Shown piece after piece: positions 1,434 through 64,000 of a DNA stretch of 64,000 nucleotides. The notes beneath the pieces are model-generated. The model was not told where the DNA came from and made no database searches. It worked only from the letters and a program-made list of their open reading frames with translations. Each line of letters starts with the position of its first letter. Within the stretch, counting starts at the first letter, position 1. The DNA lies in the sequence record MK250019.1; one strand, 5' to 3'. The translations under genes were made by a program, and so were the position numbers.

Positions 1434-2883
1434 TTAGATTTTTGGTATATTAAAATTTGGGGTTGGTATATTAGGCGGCTGATAACTATTTGTTATACTT
1501 GATGGATTACTCATTTGATTTTTTAAATCATTCATGTTATAACGACTTTGCATATTATTCATTTGTTTTTCCATACGCTGATTTTCTTCTTTATTTTGTT
1601 TTTCTTGCTCTTCCATATTTTCTTTATAAACATCTAATATATCAAGAATTTCAAAAAAAGACATTTCTTTAATATCTTGAAAACTTAGNNNNNNNNNNNN
1701 NNNNNNNNNNNNNNNNNNNNNNNNNNNNNNNNNNNNNNNNNNNNNNNNNNNNNNNNNNNNNNNNNNNNNNNNNNNNNNNNNNNNNNNNNNNNNNNNNNNN
1801 NNNNNNNNNNNNNNNNNNNNNNNNNNNNNNNNNNNNNNNNNNNNNNNNNNNNNNNNNNNNNNNNNNNNNNNNNNNNNNNNNNNNNNNNNNNNNNNNNNNN
1901 NNNNNNNNNNNNNNNNNNNNNNNNNNNNNNNNNNNNNNNNNNNNNNNNNNNNNNNNNNNNNNNNNNNNNNNNNNNNNNNNNNNNNNNNNNNNNNNNNNNN
2001 NNNNNNNNNNNNNNNNNNNNNNNNNNNNNNNNNNNNNNNNNNNNNNNNNNNNNNNNNNNNNNNNNNNNNNNNNNNNNNNNNNNNNNNNNNNNNNNNNNNN
2101 NNNNNNNNNNNNNNNNNNNNNNNNNNNNNNNNNNNNNNNNNNNNNNNNNNNNNNNNNNNNNNNNNNNNNNNNNNNNNNNNNNNNNNNNNNNNNNNNNNNN
2201 NNNNNNNNNNNNNNNNNNNNNNNNNNNNNNNNNNNNNNNNNNNNNNNNNNNNNNNNNNNNNNNNNNNNNNNNNNNNNNNNNNNNNNNNNNNNNNNNNNNN
2301 NNNNNNNNNNNNNNNNNNNNNNNNNNNNNNNNNNNNNNNNNNNNNNNNNNNNNNNNNNNNNNNNNNNNNNNNNNNNNNNNNNNNNNNNNNNNNNNNNNNN
2401 NNNNNNNNNNNNNNNNNNNNNNNNNNNNNNNNNNNNNNNNNNNNNNNNNNNNNNNNNNNNNNNNNNNNNNNNNNNNNNNNNNNNNNNNNNNNNNNNNNNT
2501 GTTTCATCTGTCATAGACCAGTGTCTAATATCACCACCTGATGCTGCACGTACAAAAATTCGTGTTCCTTCTGGATAGAAAATACCACCCGTTGGAAGAG
2601 ACTCTAATGGTAATTCAAGAAATCCCATACCACTGTCATGAATTTCTTTCTTCAATTCATCCTGACGTATTGCATGTGCTTCTCTCATACTTGGTCGTGC
2701 TTTCGCATCTGCAACTTGCTCTGCAAAATGTTCCTGTGCTGTTTGTACATTTTCTACACTTGGTGCTTTCTTTGTGTTTGCTTTTGTCTTTCCTTGTTCA
2801 ATCTCTGCAAGATGTGCTGCACCTTCTGCTGTCTATGCATACTGTGCAAGAACATCTTCTACTGTATGTTTCTAATCTGACAT
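1434..2883 (-). CDS. putative baseplate hub / tail assembly protein(s), T4 gp26/gp51-like; middle lost in N gap, may be two genes
   Basis: With TAG=Q the 1669..2688 frame extends to ATG 2883. LESLPTGGIFYPEGTRIFVR resembles myophage gp26-like proteins. The end LSFQDIKEMSFFEILDILDVYKENMEEQ resembles gp51-like chaperone ends. Confidence 0.4.
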
Positions 2884-2954
2884 AATTTCGAAATTATTGT
2901 TTGTTTTATTTTATACTAAATTATTTAACTTTTGTTTACTTTATTTTATTAAGA

Positions 2955-5118
2955 CTAGTATTCCACTTTTCCTTCATATAGAGTTGATTGNNNNNNNNNN
3001 NNNNNNNNNNNNNNNNNNNNNNNNNNNNNNNNNNNNNNNNNNNNNNNNNNNNNNNNNNNNNNNNNNNNNNNNNNNNNNNNNNNNNNNNNNNNNNNNNNNN
3101 NNNNNNNNNNNNNNNNNNNNNNNNNNNNNNNNNNNNNNNNNNNNNNNNNNNNNNNNNNNNNNNNNNNNNNNNNNNNNNNNNNNNNNNNNNNNNNNNNNNN
3201 NNNNNNNNNNNNNNNNNNNNNNNNNNNNNNNNNNNNNNNNNNNNNNNNNNNNNNNNNNNNNNNNNNNNNNNNNNNNNNNNNNNNNNNNNNNNNNNNNNNN
3301 NNNNNNNNNNNNNNNNNNNNNNNNNNNNNNNNNNNNNNNNNNNNNNNNNNNNNNNNNNNNNNNNNNNNNNNNNNNNNNNNNNNNNNNNNNNNNNNNNNNN
3401 NNNNNNNNNNNNNNNNNNNNNNNNNNNNNNNNNNNNNNNNNNNNNNNNNNNNNNNNNNNNNNNNNNNNNNNNNNNNNNNNNNNNNNNNNNNNNNNNNNNN
3501 NNNNNNNNNNNNNNNNNNNNNNNNNNNNNNNNNNNNNNNNNNNNNNNNNNNNNNNNNNNNNNNNNNNNNNNNNCAAATAGATTTACAATACATATTATTT
3601 CTTATTTGTGGTTTAGGTGTATATTTACATTTCCAAAATGAACCTTCTATATCTTTATTATGTTTTGAATAATCGATTATATTAGTAAAACTTTCAATTG
3701 ACTCTATTGCATCAGTTTCACCATCACTTTCTAATAATCTTGTATTTGGAACATAATTATATGTAACTGCAACTTCATTATAAATAATCCATTTTGCTGC
3801 ATCATTNNNNNNNNNNNNNNNNNNNNNNNNNNNNNNNNTATTAGATAAATTATCATAAAACGCTTCAGAAACCAATGGAATCTCATTATTTTCTATTCTT
3901 CTCATAATGTCATCTGAAAGTTCAACTACATTATTTCCTTCACCATATACTGGATAATATACAATTTCTTTATTATCTGTATCTTCATATATTCTTACAT
4001 TGAAGTAATCAGAATTCGACTTATATTTTATAGCAATCTGATTTATTGGATCTTGATGGAATGTACTTGCATATATATTAGGATCTGTTGATGTAAGATT
4101 ATCTTCTGAAACTGTCGCAAAATTTACAATTAATGTTGGATCACTCAATATCTAATATTCTAATTTACGTTGTGTATTATCATTTGGTATTTTCCCATAA
4201 TATTGAATATTAGTTTTCTAAACATCATTTTTATCTGTAACAGTATTTTCTGTTCTGATTAATTCGCCATGTCCATATTTACTTTCTACTGATAAATTTA
4301 AATCACCATTTAATGACATATAATATGCAGATGGTACTAAAAATTCTATATATCTATCATAAAAACAACCATTCTGATATATTGGAGATTTATGCCATTT
4401 AACAACATTATGAAGAATCAAACATTCTTTAGGGNNNNNNNNNNNNNNNNNNNNNNNNNNNNNNNNNNNNAATGATAATTTTTCAACCTCAGTTTGTTTT
4501 GCATTGTTCTAATATGCAGACTATACTGCAGTTGGATTATCATTTGTAGTTGCAACATTATTATCATCTATCAATATATATTCTGTTTCGAATATAGGAT
4601 TATGATATTCATCATACATTTTATATGTATTACTATTAGGATACATTTTCTAAGAAGGTGTTAAATATCTTGCATTCGTTTTTACTTGTAATGTTATACC
4701 AGCTAATCTATCTAATGTAAAACCATATATAAAANNNNNNNNNNNNNNNNNNNNNNNNNNTTTACCACCTTTATGTTCTGTAAATGTATCAACATTATCT
4801 TTAATATTCAATAAAGATTCGTTACTATATACTTTACTACTATGTTTATCTATTACATGTTTATCTAATATTGAACTATCAACATTTAATGTATTTTGTT
4901 TTGTTAATCCAACAAATGTATATTCTGACATTGATTCATCTGGAAACTTAATAAAATACTAAGCATTAGAATATCTGTCATTATCTATATCCTATGGTTT
5001 TTCTGTATAATATACATTACCATCTTTACCTATATATACTGTATAATCTGTTGTTTTTTCATCAGGCGTATCATTTGCATCATACTAATTAGCTACATAT
5101 TCTAACATTATCTGATTA
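2955..5118 (-). CDS. large TAG-containing protein, probably structural; start lies in N gap
   Basis: Track ORFs 2955..4148, 4218..4421, 4650..4931 and the 3' part of 5085..5468 share one frame and are separated by TAG. Several N gaps interrupt it. Confidence 0.45.
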
Positions 5119-5290
5119 NNNNNNNNNNNNNNNNNNNNNNNNNNNNNNNNNNNNNNNNNNNNNNNNNNNNNNNNNNNNNNNNNNNNNNNNNNNNNNNNNN
5201 NNNNNNNNNNNNNNNNNNNNNNNNNNNNNNNNNNNNNNNNNNNNNNNNNNNNNNNNNNNNNNNNNNNNNNNNNNNNNNNNNNNNNNNNNN

Positions 5291-5972
5291 TTGTAGGACC
5301 TATAGACCATTTTTTCTGTTTATAATATTTCTTCAAATATTTAGATTTTGATGGGTCAAACATAACACCATCCATATTACTGATAGAAATATATGGATTA
5401 TCTGTTCTACCTATTAATCTAATTCCTGATTTATCTTCAATAATATCTAATGTTAAATTTGTATTCATAGTAAATTGATCTATATGTGCAGAGAATGATG
5501 AAAAGTCTTTTCTGACATCTGTTCCACCTGTAACTGCATAATATCCTTTTGGTTCATCAATATGCCATTTTAAATTATATATAGAATCACCATGTATAAT
5601 TGTATCAGACTATGCATATACAGTATCAATTTTTGTATGCATCTTTGTCTATGTAATTACCAAAGGATTATCTTTTAATGATTTTAATTCCTATGCTAAT
5701 TCACAATTCTGATTTTGTAAATCTTTTATATTCTGTACATAGATTTTTTTTGATACATATAAATTCTTTAATTTATTTTTGTAAATTTCCAATGAATCAT
5801 TATCATATATTACCAATGGTGGTTCAATTGATTTTGATTCATAATGTCTATACTTCATATAACATACACATGAAATCATTACAAATAAGATAATAACATA
5901 ATCTTTAAATGTTAATTTTCTATNNNNNNNNNNNNNNNNNNNNNNNNNGGTATCTAATATCTTGGTTATCAT
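5291..5972 (-). CDS. membrane-anchored coiled-coil protein (DUF6549-like / spanin-like), 3' end in N gap
   Basis: 5691..5972 reads through TAG in frame into 5085..5468. It has an N-terminal TM helix, a coiled coil and a KWSIGPT motif near the gap. Confidence 0.45.
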
Positions 5973-6255
5973 AATATTATAAATTATTTTTTAAATTCAT
6001 TAAAAATATTTCTCAAAAATGTAGACTTTTTCACAAAAGCCCAGTATAATAAATATCTTAGATGTTTAGGTTGAGATAGATATTATATATAATATGTAAA
6101 AAATTTAATTTTTAAGAAATAATTTTAAATATTTATTTTTGTTAAATATTATATATAATTTTTAATTAATATTCTTTTTAATTATTAATATTATTTAGAA
6201 TTTGTATAAATTAATATATAAATAATATTGATTATCAAATAGTTATAAATTATTT

Positions 6256-7800
6256 TTAGTGTCTATTAAAAATAATTTGTAAAAATGTAGACTTTTTTGA
6301 GAATANNNNNNNNNNNNNNNNNNNNNNNNNNNNNNNNNNNNNNNNNNNNNNNNNNNNNNNNNNNNNNNNNNNNNNNNNNNNNNNNNNNNNNNNNNNNNNN
6401 NNNNNNNNNNNNNNNNNNNNNNNNNNNNNNNNNNNNNNNNNNNNNNNNNNNNNNNNNNNNNNNNNNNNNNNNNNNNNNNNNNNNNNNNNNNNNNNNNNNN
6501 NNNNNNNNNNNNNNNNNNNNNNNNNNNNNNNNNNNNNNNNNNNNNNNNNNNNNNNNNNNNNNNNNNNNNNNNNNNNNNNNNNNNNNNNNNNNNNNNNNNN
6601 NNNNNNNNNNNNNNNNNNNNNNNNNNNNNNNNNNNNNNNNNNNNNNNNNNNNNNNNNNNNNNNNNNNNNNNNNNNNNNNNNNNNNNNNNNNNNNNNNNNN
6701 NNNNNNNNNNNNNNNNNNNNNNNNNNNNNNNNNNNNNNNNNNNNNNNNNNNNNNNNNNNNNNNNNNNNNNNNNNNNNNNNNNNNNNNNNNNNNNNNNNNN
6801 NNNNNNNNNNNNNNNNNNNNNNNNNNNNNNNNNNNNNNNNNNNNNNNNNNNNNNNNNNNNNNNNNNNNNNNNNNNNNNNNNNNNNNNNNNNNNNNNNNNN
6901 NNNNNNNNNNNNNNNNNNNNNNNNNNNNNNNNNNNNNNNNNNNNNNNNNNNNNNNNNNNNNNNNNNNNNNNNNNNNNNNNNNNNNNNNNNNNNNNNNNNN
7001 NNNNNNNNNNNNNNNNNNNNNNNNNNNNNNNNNNNNNNNNNNNNNNNNNNNNNNNNNNNNNNNNNNNNNNNNNNNNNNNNNNNNTTTGGAAATCTATAAA
7101 TTCTATCAGGATTGAGTTTCTTTCTTGTATTAATTAAAAGTTCTCGATCTTCTGGATGTTCATTTAAATGTCTTCCATAATCATAATAACAACCATAAAT
7201 ATATTGCATATGACCTATATTACATAAACCGCAATATTCTGTATGCAAACCATAATCATTTAGAAATGTTAAAATATTAATTGAACCCTGACGTCTAAAA
7301 GTATATGTAAAATCAAGCGGTGTTTTTCTTTCTTTAATAGGATTTACAATTTTCTTATTAAGACCGCGTGCTTTATAGATTTGANNNNNNNNNNNNNNNN
7401 NNNNNNNNNNNNNNNNNNNNNNNNNNNNNNNNNNNNNNNNNNNNNNNNNNNNNNNNNNNNNNNNNNNNNNNNCTTCACCTATAATAAAATTATCATCTAC
7501 AAATAAAGCTTCAAGAATATTAGGATTTGCCTTTACAAGTAATGATATAAATTTATTAAGTTCATACCATTTATTATCATTCTTTGAATCCGCGATTTCT
7601 TCTTTATATGTATTATAACCAAGAAGTTCTTTAATTGAGCAAATGTAAATTCCACCTGAATCTTTATCACTTTCTGGAGTATCTAGCCCATATGAAACCG
7701 AACCCCTGATATATTCAATAAGTAATCTTCCATCTTTTCTGATTTTATCAAATTCAGGAATTCCTACAGTCTCTGTTTTAAAATTCTTATATGATTTCAT
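6256..7800 (-). CDS. DNA polymerase beta-superfamily nucleotidyltransferase (PF10127/RlaP-like); C-terminus in N gap, true end uncertain
   Basis: YIRGSVSYGLDTPESDKDSGGIY is a GS..YG....SDxD motif; ANPNILEAL follows. Confidence 0.7.
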   Translation of the reverse strand: MKSYKNFKTETVGIPEFDKIRKDGRLLIEYIRGSVSYGLDTPESDKDSGGIYICSIKELLGYNTYKEEIADSKNDNKWYELNKFISLLVKANPNILEALFVDDNFIIGEXXXXXXXXXXXXXXXXXXXXXXXXXXXXXXQIYKARGLNKKIVNPIKERKTPLDFTYTFRRQGSINILTFLNDYGLHTEYCGLCNIGHMQYIYGCYYDYGRHLNEHPEDRELLINTRKKLNPDRIYRFPXXXXXXXXXXXXXXXXXXXXXXXXXXXXXXXXXXXXXXXXXXXXXXXXXXXXXXXXXXXXXXXXXXXXXXXXXXXXXXXXXXXXXXXXXXXXXXXXXXXXXXXXXXXXXXXXXXXXXXXXXXXXXXXXXXXXXXXXXXXXXXXXXXXXXXXXXXXXXXXXXXXXXXXXXXXXXXXXXXXXXXXXXXXXXXXXXXXXXXXXXXXXXXXXXXXXXXXXXXXXXXXXXXXXXXXXXXXXXXXXXXXXXXXXXXXXXXXXXXXXXFSKKSTFLQIIFNRH

Positions 7801-41515: not shown

Positions 41516-42025
41516 TTATATTAATGATGAAAAGTCTGCAATTAACAAAATATAAAAACATCTTAATGTACTGTTGATTATATGTTTTAATTTTGTTAAC
41601 TAAGAGATTCTTGTAAATTATAAAAATTTACAAATCGAGGGGAACGCATAACGGCAATTATGTTAGTACTTGGCGTTTAATGAAATGAATATGTATATTT
41701 GCCGATGTGCATATGAGTGACATTAAATGATAAAATTATAATAGTGTAGCGGTTCGCACGCCCGTTGGTAAAACGGGAAGGGTTTATGTTTGAAAGCATA
41801 TTAGGGGTTCGACTCCCGCTTATAAACAATTAAATTACATAATGTTCTCACGAAGAGCGAGCATCGGAAGGTGAGCAATTTAGAAAGATGTTTAAGAGTG
41901 ATCATATTAAATTGATTTCTAACAGAAATACGGTGACGTAGGAGCTGAAAAAGAACAAACGTATGGTAATGTTAGCATTATGTATTTAAAAAATATTAGT
42001 CCTCACAGACTTTACATTTTTTATA
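41516..42025 (+). ncRNA. candidate ~500-nt structured RNA
   Basis: Closing helix AAAGTCTG (41531-38)/CAGACTTT (42006-13). Internal helices include TTAACAAAAT/ATTTTGTTAA and TACATAATG/CATTATGTA. No ORF. Confidence 0.5.
41735..41827 (+). tRNA. atypical tRNA-Tyr-like (GTA) domain with a long variable arm
   Basis: D arm GTGT-AGCGGTTC-GCAC, anticodon arm CCCGT-TGGTAAA-ACGGG and T loop TTCGACT. Deviations: G33, only 3 bp in the T stem and a mismatched 1-72 pair. Confidence 0.45.
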
Positions 42026-51076: not shown

Positions 51077-51553
51077 TCAGAATAATGCATCACATTTATT
51101 CTCTTTTATCGGACACCAATTTTCATAATCCCATTTGAAAAAATCTGTGCAAACGAGATTATTGTTTAATATTGATTTTGCTGTATCAACATTATAATCT
51201 ATATTAAGTTTAGATAACATTTCTAATATTCGTTCATGTGTTTCAATGACATTATCTTGAATTAGTTCTGTTCCGTATGTATGTTCTAATGCTTGTTGCC
51301 ATGTTGAACCATGTTGTATCTTATTATATATTATATAGATAACGAAATTTCCATTTCCGAATGAAGGCTCTAAGAAATTTGATTCTGTATTATTCCACTG
51401 TTCTTCTGAAACTTTATCAGACATACGCTTAACTAATTCAAACGGAGTGAAAAACTCATTTGAACCACCTGAACCCTTTCTTCTGGAAACTCGCTCTTCC
51501 GTTGCATAACTATCTAAACTCAAAAACTATTCTATATCAAAACTACTATTCAT
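51077..51553 (-). CDS. stand-alone N-terminal half of an amino-DNA methyltransferase (motifs X and I only)
   Basis: NEFFTPFELVKRM and SAM-binding FLEPSFGNGNF; no NPPY motif. ATG 51553 with one TAG. Confidence 0.8.
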
Positions 51554-51625
51554 ATTAATTATATAACAGCATATAAATTTTGTTTTATTTATTATAAAAA
51601 TAAGTTAAACCCTAATTTTCATTTT

Positions 51626-51720
51626 AATGGTTTTTACGATGTTAAGGATTTTCTTGAGATGAAAAATGAAGATATAATTAAGATGAATTAGTGAAAGAAA
51701 TTTGATGTTATATTGAGTAA
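51626..51720 (+). repeat. inverted repeat A, left copy (95 bp, 94/95 identical to the reverse complement of 54392-54486)
   Basis: Direct base comparison. The single mismatch at 51692 makes TGA in place of GGA. Confidence 0.95.
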
Positions 51721-52573
51721 TGCCCCATATGATAATGGATTACATGAAAAATTTGAAGCAAAATATTTTGATATATGTGATGGATAGATTTGTTGGGTAA
51801 GTCCATTAAGCTTTTTATTGGGTAAAAAACAAAAAACAAAGATAACACATTAGTTAGATAAGTATATTTGTGATATAGAACAGATAAATGGAAATGAACA
51901 TTTTGATGCAAATATCGGAGGAAATATGGGTATCGTATTCTGTGATATGGCTGATGAACATAATGAGCATTATGTTAAGTTTGATGGTAAACAATATAAC
52001 AAATGTGAAGAAATAACGCCATATAGTGATAATGAAACAATGAAATATATTATCAATACAATATTAACAAAATGTAAGGAAGATTGTCTAGATAAACATT
52101 GTAAATTAACAGAGAAAATATTGCCTAATGATGGTCGAAATAGATATTTAGAAAATAATCCTAATAAAAATTGGTTTATAATACAATTACCATTAATCAG
52201 AGGAGGAAAAAAAGAATTGGATTATTCATCGTTGTTTACGAAAACAATGAATGATAAAATTAGAACATACAATGAGTTTGAACAACCGGGAAAACATTTA
52301 ATGTATTTTGCATTTAATACATCAGAAGAAGCAGTTAATTTCAAAAAATATTGTATGTCTGATATATGTAGATTGATGCTGTATTATTTCAAACCTAATT
52401 TAAGTTTAGGTAAAGGTGAATTAAAGTATATACCTTGGTTCAATTTTACTGATTCTATGTTTGATGGTTCTGCAACAAACGTTAACGAAAATATATACAA
52501 ATATTTTAATTTTGGAGAAAAAGAAAAAACAGAAATTAGATCAGTTATATCTGATTATTATGGTATATGGTAA
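51695..52573 (+). other. silent cassette 1: MTase catalytic segment (NAPY) + alternative TRD
   Basis: Open in code 15 (KKFDVILSNAPY...ISDYYGIW) and collinear with the C-terminus of 53491-57774. It is preceded by an in-frame TGA and has no upstream start. Confidence 0.8.
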
Positions 52574-52574
52574 T

Positions 52575-52609
52575 AAGAAAGGTTAGGAAATTAATCCTAA
52601 CCTTTTCTT
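52575..52609. terminator. bidirectional hairpin between cassette 1 and tail cassette A
   Basis: AAGAAAGGTTAGGA / TCCTAACCTTTTCTT. Confidence 0.7.
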
Positions 52610-52683
52610 ATATTGTAATAATCCGGTAAAAGTTCTTCAATATGTTTACGTATTTCATCAGAGATATTATATTTGTTAAATAA
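52591..52683 (-). pseudogene. 30-aa C-terminal tail cassette A (LFNKYNISDEIRKHIEELLPDYYNIRKGQD)
   Basis: Close paralog of the last 30 aa of cassette 2; no start codon. Confidence 0.7.
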
Positions 52684-52704
52684 GTTTCTTATTTAACAAA
52701 TATA
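52668..52704. repeat. perfect 17-bp-arm palindrome joining two tail cassettes head-to-head
   Basis: TATATTTGTTAAATAAG-TTT-CTTATTTAACAAATATA. Confidence 0.9.
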
Positions 52705-52802
52705 TTCCTGAAATGGAGGATGGAATAACTCGTAATAATATAATAAAACATATTCAACATATATTACCTGATTATTATAATATAAGAAATAATGAAAACT
52801 AA
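52689..52802 (+). pseudogene. 37-aa C-terminal tail cassette B (LFNKYIPEMEDGITRNNIIKHIQHILPDYYNIRNNEN)
   Basis: Paralogous tail with no start; followed by a hairpin at 52787-52815. Confidence 0.7.
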
Positions 52803-52823
52803 TTGTTTTCATTATTTGAATTT

Positions 52824-52842
52824 CTATTAATCATAATAGACG
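52824..52842 (+). repeat. inverted repeat B, left copy (19 bp CTATTAATCATAATAGACG; partner 54143-54161)
   Basis: Exact match, with internal dyad CTATTA-ATCA-TAATAG. Confidence 0.9.
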
Positions 52843-53494
52843 CTATATAATTTATGATGGTAAAGAATATAATAAATGTAGTGAAATAAGTTCTACTAGC
52901 AATGATAGTTTATTATAGAACTTTAAAAATATAATAACATCGATATGTAATAAAGATAATTTAGAAAAACATATGAGAGCTATACCAGATGATCCTCATT
53001 TAAAGAAATATTGGTATAATAATTAGAATGTAGATGAATATTGTATAAAAGTTGATTTAATAAGAGGACACGAAAATAAAAAAACAGGTTAGCATAAAGA
53101 TGATTTTTATACAATAATTTCTAATAATGAAAAAACAATATTATCATCAATAGGAAATTTTAAAGATTTAATTAAAAAGAAAAATAATTTAAATAAGAGA
53201 TTAATAAATTTCTATATTCCATCTATTAATTTAAATATTACAAATAATATTATAAATTATTTAAAAACAGATTTTTGTAGAGCAGGACTATTATTCCAAA
53301 AAATTAATACAAATATGTATCCAAATGTTTTTATTTATATTCCATGGTTTGATTTTTCTAATAATATATTTAGTAAAACACCATCAGAAATAGATGATTA
53401 TTTATTTACTAAATATAATATATCAAATGAAATAAGAAAACATATTGAAAAATTACTTCCGGATTATTATAATATAAGAAAAGGTAGAGATTAA
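52826..53494 (+). other. silent cassette 2: alternative TRD (222 aa)
   Basis: Open in code 15 from repeat B (INHNRRYIIYDGKEYNKC...LLPDYYNIRKGRD), in the same frame register as the main gene at repeat B. No start codon at its 5' end. Confidence 0.85.
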
Positions 53495-56400
53495 TTCTCT
53501 ACCTTTATATTTTTATATTTGCTTATATCTAAATTATAATAATTTGGTAATATCTATAATATATGATTTACAATATCTTGAGAAATATGATATTTTTTAA
53601 ATAAGTATAAATCTATATTTTCAACGGTATTATTGAATATATTATCCGAAAAATTGAAATATGGTATAAATCTACATTCACCCCCTCCTAATTCACATGA
53701 ATTTTGAATTAAATATAAACATATTCTACAAAAGTATGTTTCCGTATAATTAATCAGATTAATTATAAATTGTTTATTATTAGATGGAATATAATATTTA
53801 AGAAATATATTTCCTTTAGAATCTATTTTATTTTTTATATCTTTATATAAATATGGTGTTAACATATTTCTTGAAAGAATTCCAAAATTTATATGTTTTG
53901 TATTAGAATCAGTACCATTATATCTATTTAATCTTAAAATCCACCAATTATCATCAGGATTATGTTCTACAGGTGCATTTCCAAATTCATGAACATCAGG
54001 AATTCTTTTTACATGCATCTATAAATTATCTTTTAAATATAATGGTTGAACAATAGATTTAAATTTCATAAGTAATTCATCATTTGAATAACGAGAAATT
54101 TCTTCACATTTATTATATTTCTTTCCATCGAATAATATATAACGTCTATTATGATTAATAGGATCATTTTCCTTAAACATCTAAATAGCCATTACACCAC
54201 CAATATTAGCGTCAAAAAATTCATTACCATTTATAGATTCTATATCACTATAATCCCATGTATCTACATGTTTAACAATATCTTTCTTTTGCTGCTTACC
54301 TAATAACCATGTACTAGGCTATACAGTACAAATTTCACTTCCTATTTCAAAATATTTTGCTAACATCTTATTAGCCAAATTATATGGTGGGTTACTCAAT
54401 ATAACATCAAATTTCTTTCCCTAATTCATCTTAATTATATCTTCATTTTTCATCTCAAGAAAATCCTTAACATCGTAAAAACCATTTCCGTCAATGTCAT
54501 TTATCTTCATAATTATACTTTCCGGAAGCTATAAAGTCTTTAAAATCTTTCTAATAAAATTAATAGTCAATTCACTACTTGGAACTATCTTACATTTCTT
54601 ACAAACTTCAATTCCATAATCATTATATAACTATATAAAGAATTCACATACCTTTTCATTCACCAATAAAATACTATCCGCATTCTATACATCTTCACGA
54701 CTCAACTTCTTTACCATCTTACTAGTCAAACTAACAGGCGTTATAACTTCACTCTTATCTAATTTACCTAACTTACTAATAGCATTCTATACTCTCTATA
54801 TCGCAGAAATATTCTTATCATCCAATAAACACTTCAACTGATATATCAACATATTAATCTACATTATTTCCGCATCATTCATACGGCTAATAATATCAGA
54901 TAACTCATCAACATCAATCTTAAAATCCTTAGCAATCTGTTCACACTCTGAATCACTACATACCAATTCTATATAATTCATTATATCCTCAGGAATGTTA
55001 TTCATACAGATACAACTATACAAAACAGACTTTAACATAGTCGTAAACTTCTTTTTCATAGTCTCTAATTCTGCCTTATCCTTCTTATCAGCTTTACTAA
55101 CATTTCCAGACTTTTCCTATGCTTTATCTACAGCAGAATCAAATCCCTTATCATCAACAGGTAATTCATCACTTCCTTCTTTCTGTTCTAACTTTGTCTA
55201 ATTCAATAATCCTTCAGACCATCTCTAAATATATTTCATATTATCTAAATTATCCAAAAAAGAATTAAACTATTTCAAATCAATAGAATCTTCAATACTT
55301 CTTTCACGATTATACTTAACATATTGTTTCAATAAATCATCTGCTGTAATCTCATGAATTCCATTCAATATATGCTTTCCATTAGTATCATATACACTGT
55401 CTACATATGTAGGAACCTGTTCAATACTTTTATTGATAAGCTCCTTAACTTCTTCAATATTATGTTTCTTCGCTTTATCTGCACCACACTATGAAACAGC
55501 AGAATTTACCATCATATTATACATTCGATCAACCTTAAAATCAATCAAATATACATTAGCCTTCCTACAAATTTTCTGTTTCTGTTCAACACCATTTTCA
55601 TCTGTATAAGTAGCATTACCTACATTTCTTGTACATAATCTGAATATTGCCTGATCATATTCCTATGGTGAAGCTGTATCTTTCATATAAAACATTGCAT
55701 CCCATAAAGGAACACTAACACCTGTTAAAAATCTGTTTACTGTAATAGTTAAAGATCTCTTTCCTTTATTCTCTAAACTCCATAATGCCTGATTTAATGA
55801 TGTAGAATCAGTCGCTTCAGGATCTAATTTTCTTGCATCTTTATCTTTTGCAGTTCTTCTTTCTGTCGCTACAATAATCTTTCTATATTCATCTGATTCA
55901 GGATCATCATCGATAATATTCTTATCAATTAATAACTTTTTCAACACATGACAATCATCAATATGTGGAAGAACCATTATAATATGCTTAAATATTTCAC
56001 CTTCCTTAATTCTTTTCTAATCTAAGAAACCTGGCATTTTATGATTATTCGCACCGAATATAGATTCCATTAATTCTGTAACAGCAGATTCATTTTCAAA
56101 CTTATCATTTGAATTTTTAAATAAAAATGATAATGATGTATTAATATCCTTATTTTTACTTAATACTTTTCTACATTCCTTTGTTAAATTCATACCGAAT
56201 TTAATCATATTAGGAATACCAAAATAAGGAGATTTACTTTCATCAAAATTATCATCATTAATATGCTCATCTACCCATTTATCACGCGCATCAATCATAT
56301 CAGAGAATCCAACATTAGAAATGATTTCCTTATTCTTATAAATTTCAGAAAATTCTCCGCTTGCTAATATATAATATGGTGTACCAGAACACTGTAATGT

Positions 56401-57774
56401 ATACTTATGCTTTATTTCATCAACAGCTTTAGATATACGATCAACATCTTCAGCTTCTTTCTTTGCTTCTTTTAATTCTGTACTATTAGCTTCATATTTG
56501 TTTTTTGCTAAACCTACAGCAGTTCCATATACATTTGAATGTGAACCATAATGAGTTTCATCTATAATAATCATATCTAATGGATATTCATCATTATATA
56601 AGAATTTATGTTTATCTTTAATTACATTTGCATCAAATCCTTTCTTACCGGCAAGATCCTGTAAAGTTGCAAATACAATTACAGTTTTACCTTCATCTAT
56701 ATACTGTTTTATCTTATTAGGATTTTCTTTCTTTACTTCTTCATATACACCCTTTTGGTTTTTCTTTGATATAGTTAAACTTCCATCTGACGGTAATTCA
56801 ATAAATACAAAATTATCCAAGAAATCTTCATGGTTAATATCATCTTTCCATGCAGCTCTTACATCCGCTTTCGCAGAGGTAACTAATACATATTTAATAT
56901 CAGGTGCTTCTTTAATAATTTCATAACAACAATGGGTCTTTCCAAATCTCATAACAGCACTTAACAATAAATCTGTACATCCTCTCTTCATTGCATCAAT
57001 AGCTTTGTTAATTGCATCCTGCTGTAATGGAGTATTTTCATATGTATCAGCTGCACCATATTCATGATGTGTAGTTTCCTAATGAGTTTCTAAATCATAT
57101 AGTTTACCTACATTCTTACCTTCTTTAATATCATTTTTAATTTCTGTTATAATATCAGTAATAATCTTTTCATTTAATTCTGATGATGTATCCTTTATTT
57201 TCATATCTTTATATTTCATAAAGAATTCAGATGATACATGAATATTTTCAATACCATCTTCTTTCGCTAATCTCTTAAATTCATCAAAATCAAATTTATT
57301 TGCAGGATCTTTTAAATTAGAATAACCATAACTACGTGTACGCGCATGAACATTAAAATCCATAAAGAAAACTTTATGCATTGCATTATCTAACTATGTA
57401 GCAGTCCACCATCCTATTAATTTAGCATCACTATAATACTTCTGCCATTGTTTAACACGCTATTCAGCACCCTGAACGGTATAACCGATCTTAATGGCAT
57501 TAGGCGCATATTTTGTAATAAACGCATAAATAATAGGTGTATTAGTCTGTAACAATTCTTCTTTAGAAAATGTCTGTCCTTTATGAATTTTATCCAATTC
57601 AGACTACATACCTAAATGATTCTGATAATCATTATTTAATATATCATCAGAATCATTGTCTGTATCAGATTCATCATTAGTCTAATCATTATTCTAATTT
57701 AATTCATCCTATTTCTATCTGATACTTTCATCAAAATTATTTGACATATCTTCATTTAATGATATAATATCCAT
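53491..57774 (-). CDS. 1427-aa fusion: GIY-YIG/T5orf172-like nuclease, SF2 helicase, N6-adenine MTase and TRD (Type ISP-like order; code 15)
   Basis: Five track ORFs share one frame. By manual translation there are 26 in-frame TAG and no TAA/TGA. Motifs IYAF..IKIGYT, AVMRFGKT, IIDETHYG, CSGTPY, FLTGVSVP and SNPPY. Confidence 0.9.
54143..54161 (-). repeat. inverted repeat B, right copy (inside the main gene)
   Basis: Reverse complement of 52824-52842. Confidence 0.9.
54392..54486 (-). repeat. inverted repeat A, right copy (inside the main gene, just before NPPY)
   Basis: Reverse complement of 51626-51720 with one mismatch. Confidence 0.95.
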
Positions 57775-57812
57775 ATATGTCTATATAAGTTTAACTATAT
57801 AACTCTTCATAT

Positions 57813-61370: not shown

Positions 61371-62231
61371 ATGTTAAAAAAACTCATTTGTTTTATAATA
61401 TTAATGGATTTGTTTTCAAAGACTTTCATATTAAACATATATATAATATATGAAACAAAATTTATAAAAAATAGAGTTCTTGCATTAGATTTAAATCCAA
61501 ATTATATTGGATGGTCTATAGTTGATTGGAAATCTGAGAGTGAATTTGATGTTATTAAATCAGGTGTTTATTCAATTAAAAAATTGAATGACATAGATTT
61601 TGGTTTAAAAAATAAAGGATATAGTTCAGAATCTAATGAAAGAAAATATATTTCTGTTAAAAGAAATTATGAGACTTTACAAATTGTAAAGAATATAGTG
61701 AATAAATCTATATATTACAAATGCCAGATTATATCTATTGAAGATTTAAATATTAAATCAAGTGATAAAGAATTAGGTAAACGATTTAATAAGTTAGTAA
61801 ATAATTCATGGTGTAGAAATGCATTTGTGAATAATTTAACTAAAAGATGTAATATTCATAATATTAAATTATTGAAAGTGAAACCTGAATATTCTAGTTT
61901 TATAGGAAATTTCTTATATAGAAGTTTAAATTTACCGGATATGATATTAGCTTCAATAGAAATAGGAAGACGCGGATATGAGTTTTATAATCAATATATA
62001 AGTAAAGTAAAAGAAATTAAAAAGAATATAGTAAGACCGAATTTAAGTATATTTCAAAAGTTGTATCTTAAGTCGTTGGAAGAATTTAATTTACAGCCGA
62101 TATACAAGGATTTGATTGAATTATATTACTTCTTCAAAAAGTCGAAACTTAAATATCGACTTTCTATAGATTCATTCAATCTATAGTTTTCTAGCTTTTA
62201 TTCGAATACAAGTTTAATTGTATTTATATAA
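61371..62231 (+). mobile_element. tnpB: N-terminally truncated TnpB-like (IS200/IS605) RuvC protein
   Basis: RuvC-I LALDLNP, RuvC-II ISIEDL, VKPEYSS and RuvC-III DMILASIEIGRRG. TAG read-through extends it to 62231. No REC/WED region and no zinc finger. Confidence 0.65.
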
Positions 62232-62308
62232 ATTATAATGTTTATAATTTATTATAATAAAAGTATTTAAGGCAATTTAATAATTTATTACGATACCATG
62301 AAGATTTA

Positions 62309-63925
62309 TTGGATATATTAAAGAAGAAAACTTCTTTTTTAGATGAACATAATCCTTCTAATTCGGAACGTGTATATTGCTGGTATAATAATATAACAGA
62401 AATTCAGAAATGCCCTCATTGCGGTAAATCCAGAAAATTTCATAAATTTACATATGGATATTTTCCTACATGTGGTTCAAAAGAATGTCGTGCAAAATCC
62501 GTTGTATATGGAAATAAGTTTAATCATAATTTTGTAGAAATACAAAAGAAAATGAGAGAAACATATGCAAAAAACCATAATGGTTATACGCATAATATGC
62601 AAGATCCAGAATTTAAAAAGAAGTTTTTTGATGAGTTTAAAAAGAAACATAATGGTATATCATGTGGTGCTCAGACAGAATTAGCAAAACAAAACAGAGA
62701 GAAAACAACATTAGAAAAATATGGTTGTAAATATGCTTTATCATCTAAAGATGTAAGAGATAAAATATATGAAAAATATGGTGATGATGCAAAAATTAAA
62801 TTTGCAAAAATCGCTACTGATACACGGAAAGAAAATACATTAAATAACATTATTAAAAAGATTGAAGAATTAAATTATACATATATTTCAAATAATAATA
62901 ATTTATTTAAAATTAAATGTAATAAATGTGGACATATAAATGAAATTACAAGACAAGCAATAAACTATTACTATAGGAATAGTAATCATATATATTGTAA
63001 TAAGTGTGAATATAAAGAATTAACATATAGGAGTAATTTTGAAAAAGATGTTGTTAAAGAAATAGGAAATATTATAAAAGAAACTAACTATTCTATTATA
63101 ACAAATAAACATATTTATAATGGTAAAGAACATTTTGAAGTTGATATATTGATTCCTGAATTAAATTTAGCAATAGACTGNNNNNNNNNNNNNNNNNNNN
63201 NNNNNNNNNNNNNNNNNNNNNNNNNNNNNNNNNNNNNNNNNNNNNNNNNNNNNNNNNNNNNNNNNNNNNNNNNNNNNNNNNNNNNNNNNNNNNNNNNNNA
63301 TGATATTTATAAGAAAGACATTATATTAAGTCGTTTATCTAGTAAATTAAAATTAAATAAACATATATATGCAAGAAAATGTTTAATTAAAGAATTGACT
63401 CCTAAATTATATAGAGATTTCTGTAATGAAAATCATTTACATGGATCTGTTAATGCTTCAATAAAAGTAGGATTATTTTTTAATGATGAGTTAGTTGAAG
63501 TCGTAGGTTTAGGGAAATCTCGTAAATTAATTGGTAATAATAAAGATGAAGTTTCATATGAATTATTACGTTTATGTACAAAGAAATATATTAACGTTAT
63601 AGGTGGGTTTTCTAAATTAATGAATTATGTTATTAATAAGTTTAATATAAATTCCATATATAGTTATGCAGATTTATCATGGATAGATTTAAAAGGAACA
63701 TCATACATTAATAGTGGATTTTATATAGATAAAGTTATTGATAATGAATATTGGTGGGTTGTAAACAATATAAGAGAGAATCGATTGAATTATACAAAGA
63801 GTAAATTGGTATCATTAGGGTATGATAAGCATTTAACAGAAATTGAAATAATGCATTCTTTAAAGTATTATAGAATATTTGGTCCTGGAAATTTAAAATT
63901 TATATATAAAAAGAAAAGTCTCTAA
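62309..63925 (+). CDS. homing-endonuclease-like protein (zinc ribbon, EKYG repeats, PD-(D/E)xK, hef-like C-terminal domain); short N gap
   Basis: CPHCGK, LEKYG, EVDILIPELNLAI; C-terminal YARKC..NENHLHG..ELLRLCT..GGFSKL..SYADL. Confidence 0.75.
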   Translation: MDILKKKTSFLDEHNPSNSERVYCWYNNITEIQKCPHCGKSRKFHKFTYGYFPTCGSKECRAKSVVYGNKFNHNFVEIQKKMRETYAKNHNGYTHNMQDPEFKKKFFDEFKKKHNGISCGAQTELAKQNREKTTLEKYGCKYALSSKDVRDKIYEKYGDDAKIKFAKIATDTRKENTLNNIIKKIEELNYTYISNNNNLFKIKCNKCGHINEITRQAINYYYRNSNHIYCNKCEYKELTYRSNFEKDVVKEIGNIIKETNYSIITNKHIYNGKEHFEVDILIPELNLAIDXXXXXXXXXXXXXXXXXXXXXXXXXXXXXXXXXXXXXXXXXDIYKKDIILSRLSSKLKLNKHIYARKCLIKELTPKLYRDFCNENHLHGSVNASIKVGLFFNDELVEVVGLGKSRKLIGNNKDEVSYELLRLCTKKYINVIGGFSKLMNYVINKFNINSIYSYADLSWIDLKGTSYINSGFYIDKVIDNEYWWVVNNIRENRLNYTKSKLVSLGYDKHLTEIEIMHSLKYYRIFGPGNLKFIYKKKSL

Positions 63926-63946
63926 GAAACCAATCTTAGAGACTTT
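63915..63946. terminator. hairpin terminator
   Basis: AAAGTCTCTAAG / CTTAGAGACTTT. Confidence 0.7.
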
Positions 63947-64000
63947 ATTATATAATATTGTTTTGATAAAATTATCAAAGTCCAGCAACGTCAACACAGA

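Follow-up and report, generated by a model that had tools for sequence, protein, structure and literature searches.

Prevotella phage Lak-A2 carries an invertible multi-cassette locus for the predicted target-recognition domain of a nuclease-helicase-methyltransferase

Programmed inversions of DNA-recognition modules

Gene-altering programmed inversions are known in bacteria for Type II/IIG restriction-modification (R-M) enzymes, BREX PglX, and DISARM-like helicase-methyltransferase (MTase) fusions, in which inverted repeats inside the coding sequence swap the specificity-determining part of a single large MTase-containing polypeptide, and fusions with SNF2-type helicases are among the targets (Milman et al. 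2023, PMC9881135). These loci are in bacterial chromosomes and usually have a recombinase gene beside them. In the invertible hsdS loci of Type I R-M systems (Streptococcus pneumoniae SpnD39III/ivr, Bacteroides fragilis, and Mycoplasma), silent 5'-truncated target-recognition domain (TRD) cassettes face the expressed gene, and several nested repeat pairs give rise to several specificities from one locus. Inversions of spnIII can occur without any known site-specific recombinase (PMC6620402). In phages, switching by inversion is known for tail fibers, and the phage Mu G segment, the P1 C segment, and the p15B multiple-inversion system probably use Gin/Cin/Min serine invertases acting at short gix-type sites with an enhancer.

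Here, we analyzed a 64,000-nt window of the 541-kb genome of the lytic, uncultivated gut megaphage Prevotella phage Lak-A2 (GenBank accession number MK250019.1). Like the bacterial single-chain enzymes, a large enzyme gene in this window has inverted repeats inside its coding sequence that flank alternative endings, but the carrier is a lytic phage whose whole genome has no tyrosine or serine recombinase. In contrast to the hsdS loci, in which a separate S subunit with two TRDs is shuffled, one TRD of a single-chain enzyme is exchanged here, together with half of the catalytic domain when the outer repeat pair is used. No description of this locus was found in the Lak papers, and no description of a phage-borne invertible MTase or TRD was found in the literature searched.

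Anatomy of the locus and predicted domains of the enzyme

Lak-A2 reads TAG as Gln, which is the published code for Lak phages. Under genetic code table 11, the gene falls into short open reading frames (ORFs), whereas reading TAG as Gln restores a 1439-aa frame. Gln is about 5-fold enriched at alignment columns aligned to TAG, although some of the relatives in that alignment are themselves recoded. All elements described in the original prediction, in which the minus-strand gene is faced by two open plus-strand alternatives of its C terminus and inversion at either of two repeat pairs would fuse a cassette in frame, are present (Table 1). The conserved blocks (DGKxYNKC, IP[WY]F[DN]F[ST], and [PS][DN]YY) and divergent TRD cores are also present as described. 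However, three corrections are needed. First, the single mismatch within the first 95 nt of the outer repeat (IR-A) makes an in-frame TGA in cassette 1 of Lak-A2, where sister strains have GGA. Second, cassette 1 carries catalytic motif IV onwards and not only a TRD. Third, another inverted repeat and two tail remnants lie between the cassettes.

Table 1. Features of the invertible locus of Lak-A2, with positions given in the 64,000-nt window
Position	Strand	Feature	Remarks
53491-57810	-	Expressed gene, 1439 aa	27 in-frame TAG read as Gln; T5orf172 nuclease-like domain, ResIII/SF2 helicase, gamma-class N6-adenine MTase (NPPY), TRD3
54379-54486	-	IR-A arm inside the expressed gene	Residues about 1109-1144, just before and across motif IV; 108 nt, 95% complementary to its partner
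51626-51733	+	IR-A arm that opens cassette 1	Homology has a sharp outer edge at 51626; first 95 nt 94/95 identical (66 exact, one mismatch, 28 exact)
51626-52573	+	Cassette 1	MTase motif IV (NAPY) onwards plus TRD1; no start of its own upstream of IR-A; expressed ending in isomers L019 and L040 and in L041 and L043
51692-51694	+	In-frame TGA inside IR-A of cassette 1	Private to Lak-A2; a crossover upstream of it would carry a stop into the expressed gene
52577-52606	+	Terminator-like hairpin	Directly after cassette 1
52574-52823		Spacer	Two C-terminal tail remnants (minus strand, 52579-52683; plus strand, 52735-52804)
52579-52683 / 53402-53506		Third inverted repeat	105 nt, 81%; first tail remnant against the tail of cassette 2
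52824-52887	+	IR-B arm that opens cassette 2	64 nt, 83% complementary to its partner; 19-nt exact core at 52824-52842
54098-54161	-	IR-B arm in the expressed gene	Predicted MTase/TRD domain boundary (DGKxYNKC block); core at 54143-54161
52826-53494	+	Cassette 2	TRD2 only, 223 codons; also the only cassette in Lak-C1
53480-53506		Two-way terminator-like hairpin	Shared by cassette 2 and the expressed gene
53491-54097	-	TRD3	Ending in use in Lak-A2; in the silent slot in isomer L040
51077-51553		Divergently encoded 158-aa protein	Looks like the missing N-terminal half of an MTase; stops where the cassettes begin

The longest exact inverted match in the locus is 66 nt, against a maximum of 24 nt in 100 dinucleotide shuffles, and the only three long inverted repeats in 55.5 kb of the window all lie in this locus. 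The core of the inner repeat (IR-B), which contains the dyad CTATTA-ATCA-TAATAG, is alone within chance range, and its reality rests on register and on the isomers described below. Both cassettes are open only if TAG is read as Gln, with 293 and 223 codons free of TAA and TGA against a shuffle maximum of 153. In total, three terminator-like hairpins were found, against 0.6 expected. The cassettes appear to be promoter-less, but a promoter scan was not informative (27 found against 34 expected).

The expressed protein matches a curated Type IIG restriction-methyltransferase profile (PADLOC PDLC03626; E value, 3.9e-83; residues 91-1118), and a ResIII helicase domain was identified at residues 259-437 (E value, 6.6e-8). 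Its N-terminal domain is homologous (39% identity; E value, 6e-35) to a relative's T5orf172 domain, which belongs to the GIY-YIG superfamily. The domain order, nuclease, SF2 motor, gamma-class N6-adenine MTase, and TRD, resembles that ascribed to the Type ISP enzymes LlaGI and LlaBIII, but those enzymes probably carry an Mrr/PD-(D/E)xK nuclease, and no PD-(D/E)xK hit was found here. A sequence search against solved structures gave no hit, and Pfam, NCBIfam, and PADLOC searches with the cassettes alone gave nothing above noise. The AlphaFold2 (AF2) model of the swapped part had a pLDDT of 91.4, and Foldseek returned CamA, M.BseCI, M.TaqI, and PglX (E values, 5e-9 to 1e-6), as well as HsdM, which indicates that the variable part is the second half of a gamma-class N6-adenine MTase plus a TaqI/CamA-like TRD. 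The N and the second P of NPPY are invariant in the family. However, motif I is atypical, being NEKVCEF in Lak-A2 where relatives have NEKxGEF, and methylation activity is therefore not certain.

Inversion isomers in public assemblies

Public assemblies hold exact inversion isomers of the locus. Inverting the window in silico at IR-A reproduced contig L040 with 99.47% identity over 3769 nt and no gaps, and inverting at IR-A and then at IR-B reproduced contig L019 with 99.48% identity over 3843 nt and no gaps, whereas the native order gave broken alignments to both. The helicase joined through IR-A to cassette 1 is a called protein of 1421 to 1425 aa in at least four contigs. Among helicases that are 99 to 100% identical over their first 1100 residues, five end in TRD3 (s3-TRD3) and four in TRD1 (s1-TRD1). 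Three of the four arrangements allowed by the two nested repeat pairs exist in near-identical genomes. Cassette 2 has not been seen in the expressed position, and it has been seen only rejoined to the other constant part in the silent slot. An assembly artifact was considered and rejected, since the IR-B core is shorter than any assembly k and all four IR-A junction types occur in MEGAHIT contigs with k of 119 to 141, which exceeds the repeat length.

The architecture recurs with other repeat sequences in Lak-C1 and in contigs L011, L012, L041, and L043, although Lak-A1 and several relatives do without the system. Two other IMG/VR records carried no cassettes, and exact-pattern scans of IMG/VR for the IR-B core and for an IR-A stretch gave no hits. 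Logan contigs from wastewater and other metagenomes, which cannot show switching, had lower summed contig depth, alternative TRDs attached at 54098, and a variant lacking cassette 1, and one opposite-strand joint (53365/54053) fitted no repeat.

Mechanism and possible role of the inversions

The interpretation of the locus as a phage-borne switch was largely supported. We consider the most likely explanation, with a probability of roughly 0.62, to be a multi-cassette invertible locus in which recombination between inverted repeats inside the coding sequence flips the intervening DNA and joins the constant nuclease-helicase-MTase N-terminal part in frame to one of three TRD-bearing C-terminal modules, each with its own terminator-like hairpin. 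In this explanation, the inversion is inferred to be driven by homology, using the RecA/UvsX-type system of the phage or that of the host, and not by a dedicated invertase. The original prediction had recognized no recombinase in the window and had proposed action in trans or homologous recombination. Consistent with this, the complete Lak-A2 genome has no PF00589 or PF00239 domain but does have a RecA-family (RecA/UvsX) homolog. In addition, the IR-B arms in contigs L015 and L016 are mosaics of the two arm types, and extensive homologous recombination in Lak phages was reported by Devoto et al. However, the 19-nt IR-B core is short for RecA-type recombination and has an internal dyad, as a recombinase site might, and some inversions in Lak-A2 would give a truncated enzyme because of the TGA in cassette 1. 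We further infer that inversion recurs often enough to give mixed populations, for which contigs ending exactly at the IR-B core or 55 nt into the arm are only suggestive, and that each TRD gives a different methylated, and perhaps restricted, DNA motif. The phage may thereby hedge against the varied restriction systems of Prevotella hosts or against competing DNA.

It is possible, though less likely, that the inversions are made by a site-specific recombinase acting in trans, either a Prevotella invertase or an unrecognized phage enzyme, which would cut at the dyad core of IR-B and at a site within IR-A. In L019, the IR-B exchange falls within the 19-nt core, because the arm variants stay linked to their TRDs, and Bacteroidales invertases, including those of the Mpi family, act in trans on many loci. 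Conversely, the mosaic arms show exchange end points outside the core, and no sequence shared between IR-A and IR-B, or between the repeats of different lineages, was seen on inspection of the arms, although this was not a formal motif search. A PF00239 resolvase gene lies about 3.7 kb from the locus in contigs L019 and L027 to L030 and is also present in Lak-C1 and Lak-A1, but it is absent from Lak-A2, L026, and L031 to L033. Its catalytic domain is at the C-terminal end (residues 59-192 of 201), unlike the N-terminal catalytic domain of Hin/Gin/Cin-type invertases, and its best solved matches are ISC1926/IS607-family TnpA proteins. It was therefore rejected as the invertase.

A more doubtful explanation is that the cassettes are leftovers of past horizontal replacement of the 3' end of the gene and that the isomers reflect rare, incidental recombination with no selected role for switching. 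The C-terminal region is a mosaic hot spot among relatives, with break points at 54425, 54305, 54094, and 54018, and tail remnants lie in the spacer. Contigs L003 and L045 carry cassettes in direct orientation, which cannot switch reversibly, and cassette 1 of Lak-A2 carries a stop codon. However, the cassette frames stay open far longer than chance allows in DNA of 25% GC, IR-A is kept at 95 to 100% identity while the adjoining homologous sequence is about 70% identical, the same inverted layout recurs in diverged lineages, and three isomers differ by at most 0.5% in sequence.

It is unlikely that the silent slot is in fact expressed from the ATG inside IR-A and that its product (motif IV to TRD) combines with the 158-aa protein into a split modification-only MTase, so that each inversion, driven by the phage's own replication-coupled recombination with no invertase, would swap TRDs with the restriction-competent nuclease-helicase-MTase: although that protein has FFTP, LEPSFGNGNF, GTEL, and NLVCTDFF blocks read here as gamma-MTase motifs X and I to III, aligns by hhalign to the motif X-I region of the family (E value, 2e-4), and is encoded head-to-head with the slot ORF in contigs L013 to L016, L019, L040, L041, and L043, the hhalign probability is only 46%, there is no Pfam or PDB sequence hit, the small gene is equally conserved in relatives without cassettes, the TRD-only cassettes of Lak-C1 and L012 could not complement it, and the Lak-A2 slot ORF is broken by the TGA.

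Switching of DNA-recognition modules by inversion is known as a bacterial bet-hedging device for R-M systems, and here a lytic megaphage applies it to its own nuclease-helicase-methylase, apparently without a dedicated invertase. The locus also explains recurrent assembly breaks in Lak genomes and offers a natural set of exchangeable TRDs on a constant scaffold. If each module gives a different motif, then one phage lineage produces progeny with different epigenetic marks or different restriction targets, which would change how phage-host R-M arms races are viewed in the gut.

Genetic code and anatomy of the locus

The locus lies in the genome of Prevotella phage Lak-A2 (GenBank accession number MK250019.1), a 541,299-bp circular MAG from human faeces in Bangladesh, and the window has a G+C content of about 25%. 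Under translation table 11, the region breaks into short ORFs, whereas reading TAG as Gln gives a single long minus-strand frame. Consistent with this, Devoto et al. inferred code 15 (TAG to Gln) for all Lak phages, and public gene calls of sister contigs translate only with TAG read as Gln. In addition, Gln makes up 15% of the residues that relatives place opposite these TAG codons, against a background of 2.8%. The code is therefore shown by the genome and not assumed. No suppressor tRNA lies in the window. It contains a tRNA-Tyr (GTA) that is longer than usual, and Lak tRNAs with introns are mentioned by Devoto et al.

All of the elements in the original prediction, which described an expressed minus-strand gene faced by two start-less but open plus-strand cassettes beginning at inverted repeats, are present. 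IR-A has a sharp outer edge and decays to about 70% inward. Its longest exact inverted match (66 nt) far exceeds the maximum of 24 nt in shuffled sequences, and the only three long inverted repeats in 55.5 kb of the window all lie in this locus. The stop-free frames of the two cassettes also exceed the maximum of 153 codons in 300 shuffles, and each cassette contains in-frame TAG codons, like the expressed gene. The three endings share the DGKxYNKC, IPWF(D/N)F, and (D/N)YY blocks around cores that are 37 to 40% identical. Terminator-like hairpins follow cassette 1 and sit between cassette 2 and the expressed gene.

Three corrections to the original prediction are required. The single IR-A mismatch creates an in-frame TGA in cassette 1, where sister strains with 99% identity have GGA. 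Cassette 1 includes catalytic motif IV (NAPY) onwards, so it is more than a TRD. Finally, a third inverted repeat and two tail remnants lie in the spacer.

Coordinates of the features of the Lak-A2 locus and of related sequences (window positions unless a contig is named)
Feature	Position	Strand	Description
Expressed gene	53491-57810	minus	1439 aa, 27 in-frame TAG
IR-A	51626-51733 / 54379-54486		108 nt, 95% complementary; 66 exact, one mismatch, then 28 exact
IR-B	52824-52887 / 54098-54161		64 nt, 83% complementary; exact 19-nt core with a 6-4-6 dyad
Cassette 1	51695-52573		293 codons free of TAA/TGA, three in-frame TAG
In-frame TGA of cassette 1	51692-4		At the single IR-A mismatch
Cassette 2	52826-53494		223 codons free of TAA/TGA, three in-frame TAG
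Third inverted repeat	52579-52683 / 53402-53506		105 nt, 81%; between a tail remnant and the tail of cassette 2
Small conserved gene	51077-51553	minus	158 aa, head-to-head with the cassette slot
Joint in contigs of two wastewater runs	51600 / 52819		6 other letters in between; shorter side 31 nt, depth 12.9
Region compared with Lak-A1 (L036, MK250015.1)	51134-57506
Region variable between strains	61371-63954; L027:6133-9833		Between the 634-aa gene and the Gp23-like capsid gene
tRNA-Tyr (GTA)	41735-41827		93 nt
Runs of N	1689-7472 and 63181-63299		Ten runs, 2671 bases in all
Double-inversion isomer	L019:8458-12300
TRD1 in other contigs	L017:2-880; also L010, L012, L018
Cassettes in direct orientation	L003:11548-12624; L045:1-2164

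Predicted enzyme encoded by the long gene

A Pfam search identified ResIII at residues 259 to 437 of the protein, and the PADLOC model "Type IIG restriction enzyme-methyltransferase" matches residues 91 to 1118 with an E value of 3.9e-83. Residues 70 to 260 are 39% identical (E value of 6e-35) to the part of the relative P0234 that carries a T5orf172 (GIY-YIG superfamily) hit above the Pfam cutoff. An AlphaFold2 model of residues 985 to 1439 has a mean pLDDT of 91.4, and the best Foldseek matches to that model are CamA, M.BseCI, M.TaqI, BREX PglX/BrxX, and HsdM, all of which are gamma-class N6-adenine DNA methyltransferases and most of which carry a C-terminal TRD. In the family alignment, N and the second P of NPPY are invariant. 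However, motif I is atypical, being NEKVCEF here and NEKxGEF in relatives, and activity is therefore inferred and not certain. By the secondary structure of the model, IR-A is inferred to cover the helix and strand leading into NPPY, and IR-B is inferred to lie where the Rossmann domain ends and the TRD begins.

The conserved 158-aa gene next to the cassette slot has FFTP, LEPSFGNGNF, GTEL, and NLVCTDFF blocks that look like MTase motifs X and I to III, and it stops where the cassettes begin. However, an hhalign comparison with the motif X-I region of the family gives an E value of 2e-4 with a probability of only 46%, no Pfam or PDB hits were found, and the gene is also present in relatives without cassettes.

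Inversion isomers and related loci

A search with cassette 2 retrieved a 320-aa ORF (P0042) on a 434,515-bp scaffold (L019), which consists of the expressed IR-A-to-IR-B segment of the window joined to TRD2 and lies in the slot where the window has cassette 1. The long gene of L019 ends in cassette 1. Inverting the window in silico at IR-A and then at IR-B reproduces L019 with 99.48% identity over 3843 nt and no gap, whereas the native order gives broken alignments. A second scaffold (L040, 3777 nt) spans the whole locus and equals the single IR-A inversion with 99.47% identity over 3769 nt and no gap. The contigs L013 to L016 show the window's order on the cassette-1 side, and the full-length proteins P0348, P0350, P0352, and P0358 carry the window's ending. 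Among proteins with 99 to 100% identity to the Lak-A2 protein (P0001) over their first 1100 residues, five end in that of the window (s3-TRD3) and four in that of cassette 1 (s1-TRD1). Three of the four possible arrangements therefore exist, differing by at most 0.5% in sequence, while the fourth, with TRD2 expressed, was not found. The TRD2 tail of L019 differs from that of the window at two residues, one of which matches the tail remnant of the third inverted repeat, and this may be a conversion patch.

These isomers are not assembly artefacts. The 19-nt core of IR-B is shorter than any assembler's k, so the L019 and L040 junctions need real reads. For IR-A, each junction type occurs in MEGAHIT contigs whose k exceeds the repeat, namely, flank-A-s1 in L014 (k of 141), helicase-A-s3 in L030 (k of 141), helicase-A-s1 and flank-A-s3 in L041 (k of 119), and helicase-A-s1 in L043 (k of 127). 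Switching within one population is not shown. The MEGAHIT contig L014 ends on the last base of the exact core, three SPAdes scaffolds end exactly 55 nt into the cassette-2 arm, and several large scaffolds end in IR-A. These breaks fit mixed junctions but could also come from coexisting strains.

The C-terminal region is a diversity hot spot, and relatives that are 91 to 97% identical upstream diverge at window position 54425, 54305, 54094, 54046, or 54018. No cassette is present in the relatives L001, L004, and L005, one is present in Lak-C1, L012, L043, and the more distant L011, and two or more are present in Lak-A2, L019, L040, L041, and L045. Contigs in two wastewater runs represent a variant without cassette 1. 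Lak-A1, which is 98 to 99% identical in the flanks, lacks the whole nuclease-helicase-MTase gene and both cassettes, and only about 300 nt of the 5' end remain. The inverted repeats always sit at block A or block B, but their sequence and length differ (60 nt at 93%, 79 nt at 89%, 157 nt at 87%, and 143 nt at 87%). L003 and L045 carry extra cassettes in direct orientation relative to the expressed gene or to each other, where recombination would delete rather than invert. In addition, chimeric ORFs (P0044 and P0045) show exchange at further conserved blocks. TRD1 is 99% identical at the DNA level in contigs whose other parts are only 76 to 94% identical, and one of them, a pig-gut contig, has HK97-type capsid, portal, and TerL genes next to it, which suggests recent horizontal movement of TRD modules.

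Inversion mechanism and possible function

The complete Lak-A2 record has no tyrosine recombinase and no serine recombinase, but it does encode a RecA-family protein. The resolvase gene next to the locus in some sister strains is an IS607-type transposase and is absent from Lak-A2. In the variable region where it lies, some strains carry the IS607-type TnpA (201 aa) plus a 449-aa ORF and a REase_MTES_1575-like gene, whereas Lak-A2 has a 286-aa ORF and a longer MTES_1575-like gene instead. In L019, the IR-B exchange lies within the 19-nt core. In L015 and L016, however, the arm next to the spacer is a patchwork of the two arm types, which is the signature of heteroduplex repair and not of conservative site-specific exchange. 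Within one genome, IR-A is kept near-identical while the neighboring homologous sequence is about 70% identical, which is interpreted as concerted evolution. Lak phages are known for extensive homologous recombination (Devoto et al.), and recombinase-independent inversion is documented for the pneumococcal spnIII locus (PMC6620402). Homology-driven inversion is therefore favored, although a trans-acting invertase remains a live alternative.

Programmed inversions of Type II/IIG enzymes, of PglX, and of DISARM-like helicase fusions have been described in bacteria (PMC9881135), inverting hsdS loci are well known, and phage-borne inversions of tail-fiber genes are classical. However, no report of an invertible MTase or TRD locus in a phage was found in the library searched, and none was found in the Lak papers in term searches of Devoto et al. 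and Crisci et al.

Because of the TGA in cassette 1 of Lak-A2, crossovers in the first 66 nt of IR-A would give a truncated protein in this genome. Two readings of the function fit the data, and nothing in the present results decides between them. The enzyme may mark phage DNA with a variable motif to escape the varied R-M systems of Prevotella, or alternatively, it may be a Type ISP-like restriction enzyme aimed at host or rival DNA, with self-protection by its own methylation.
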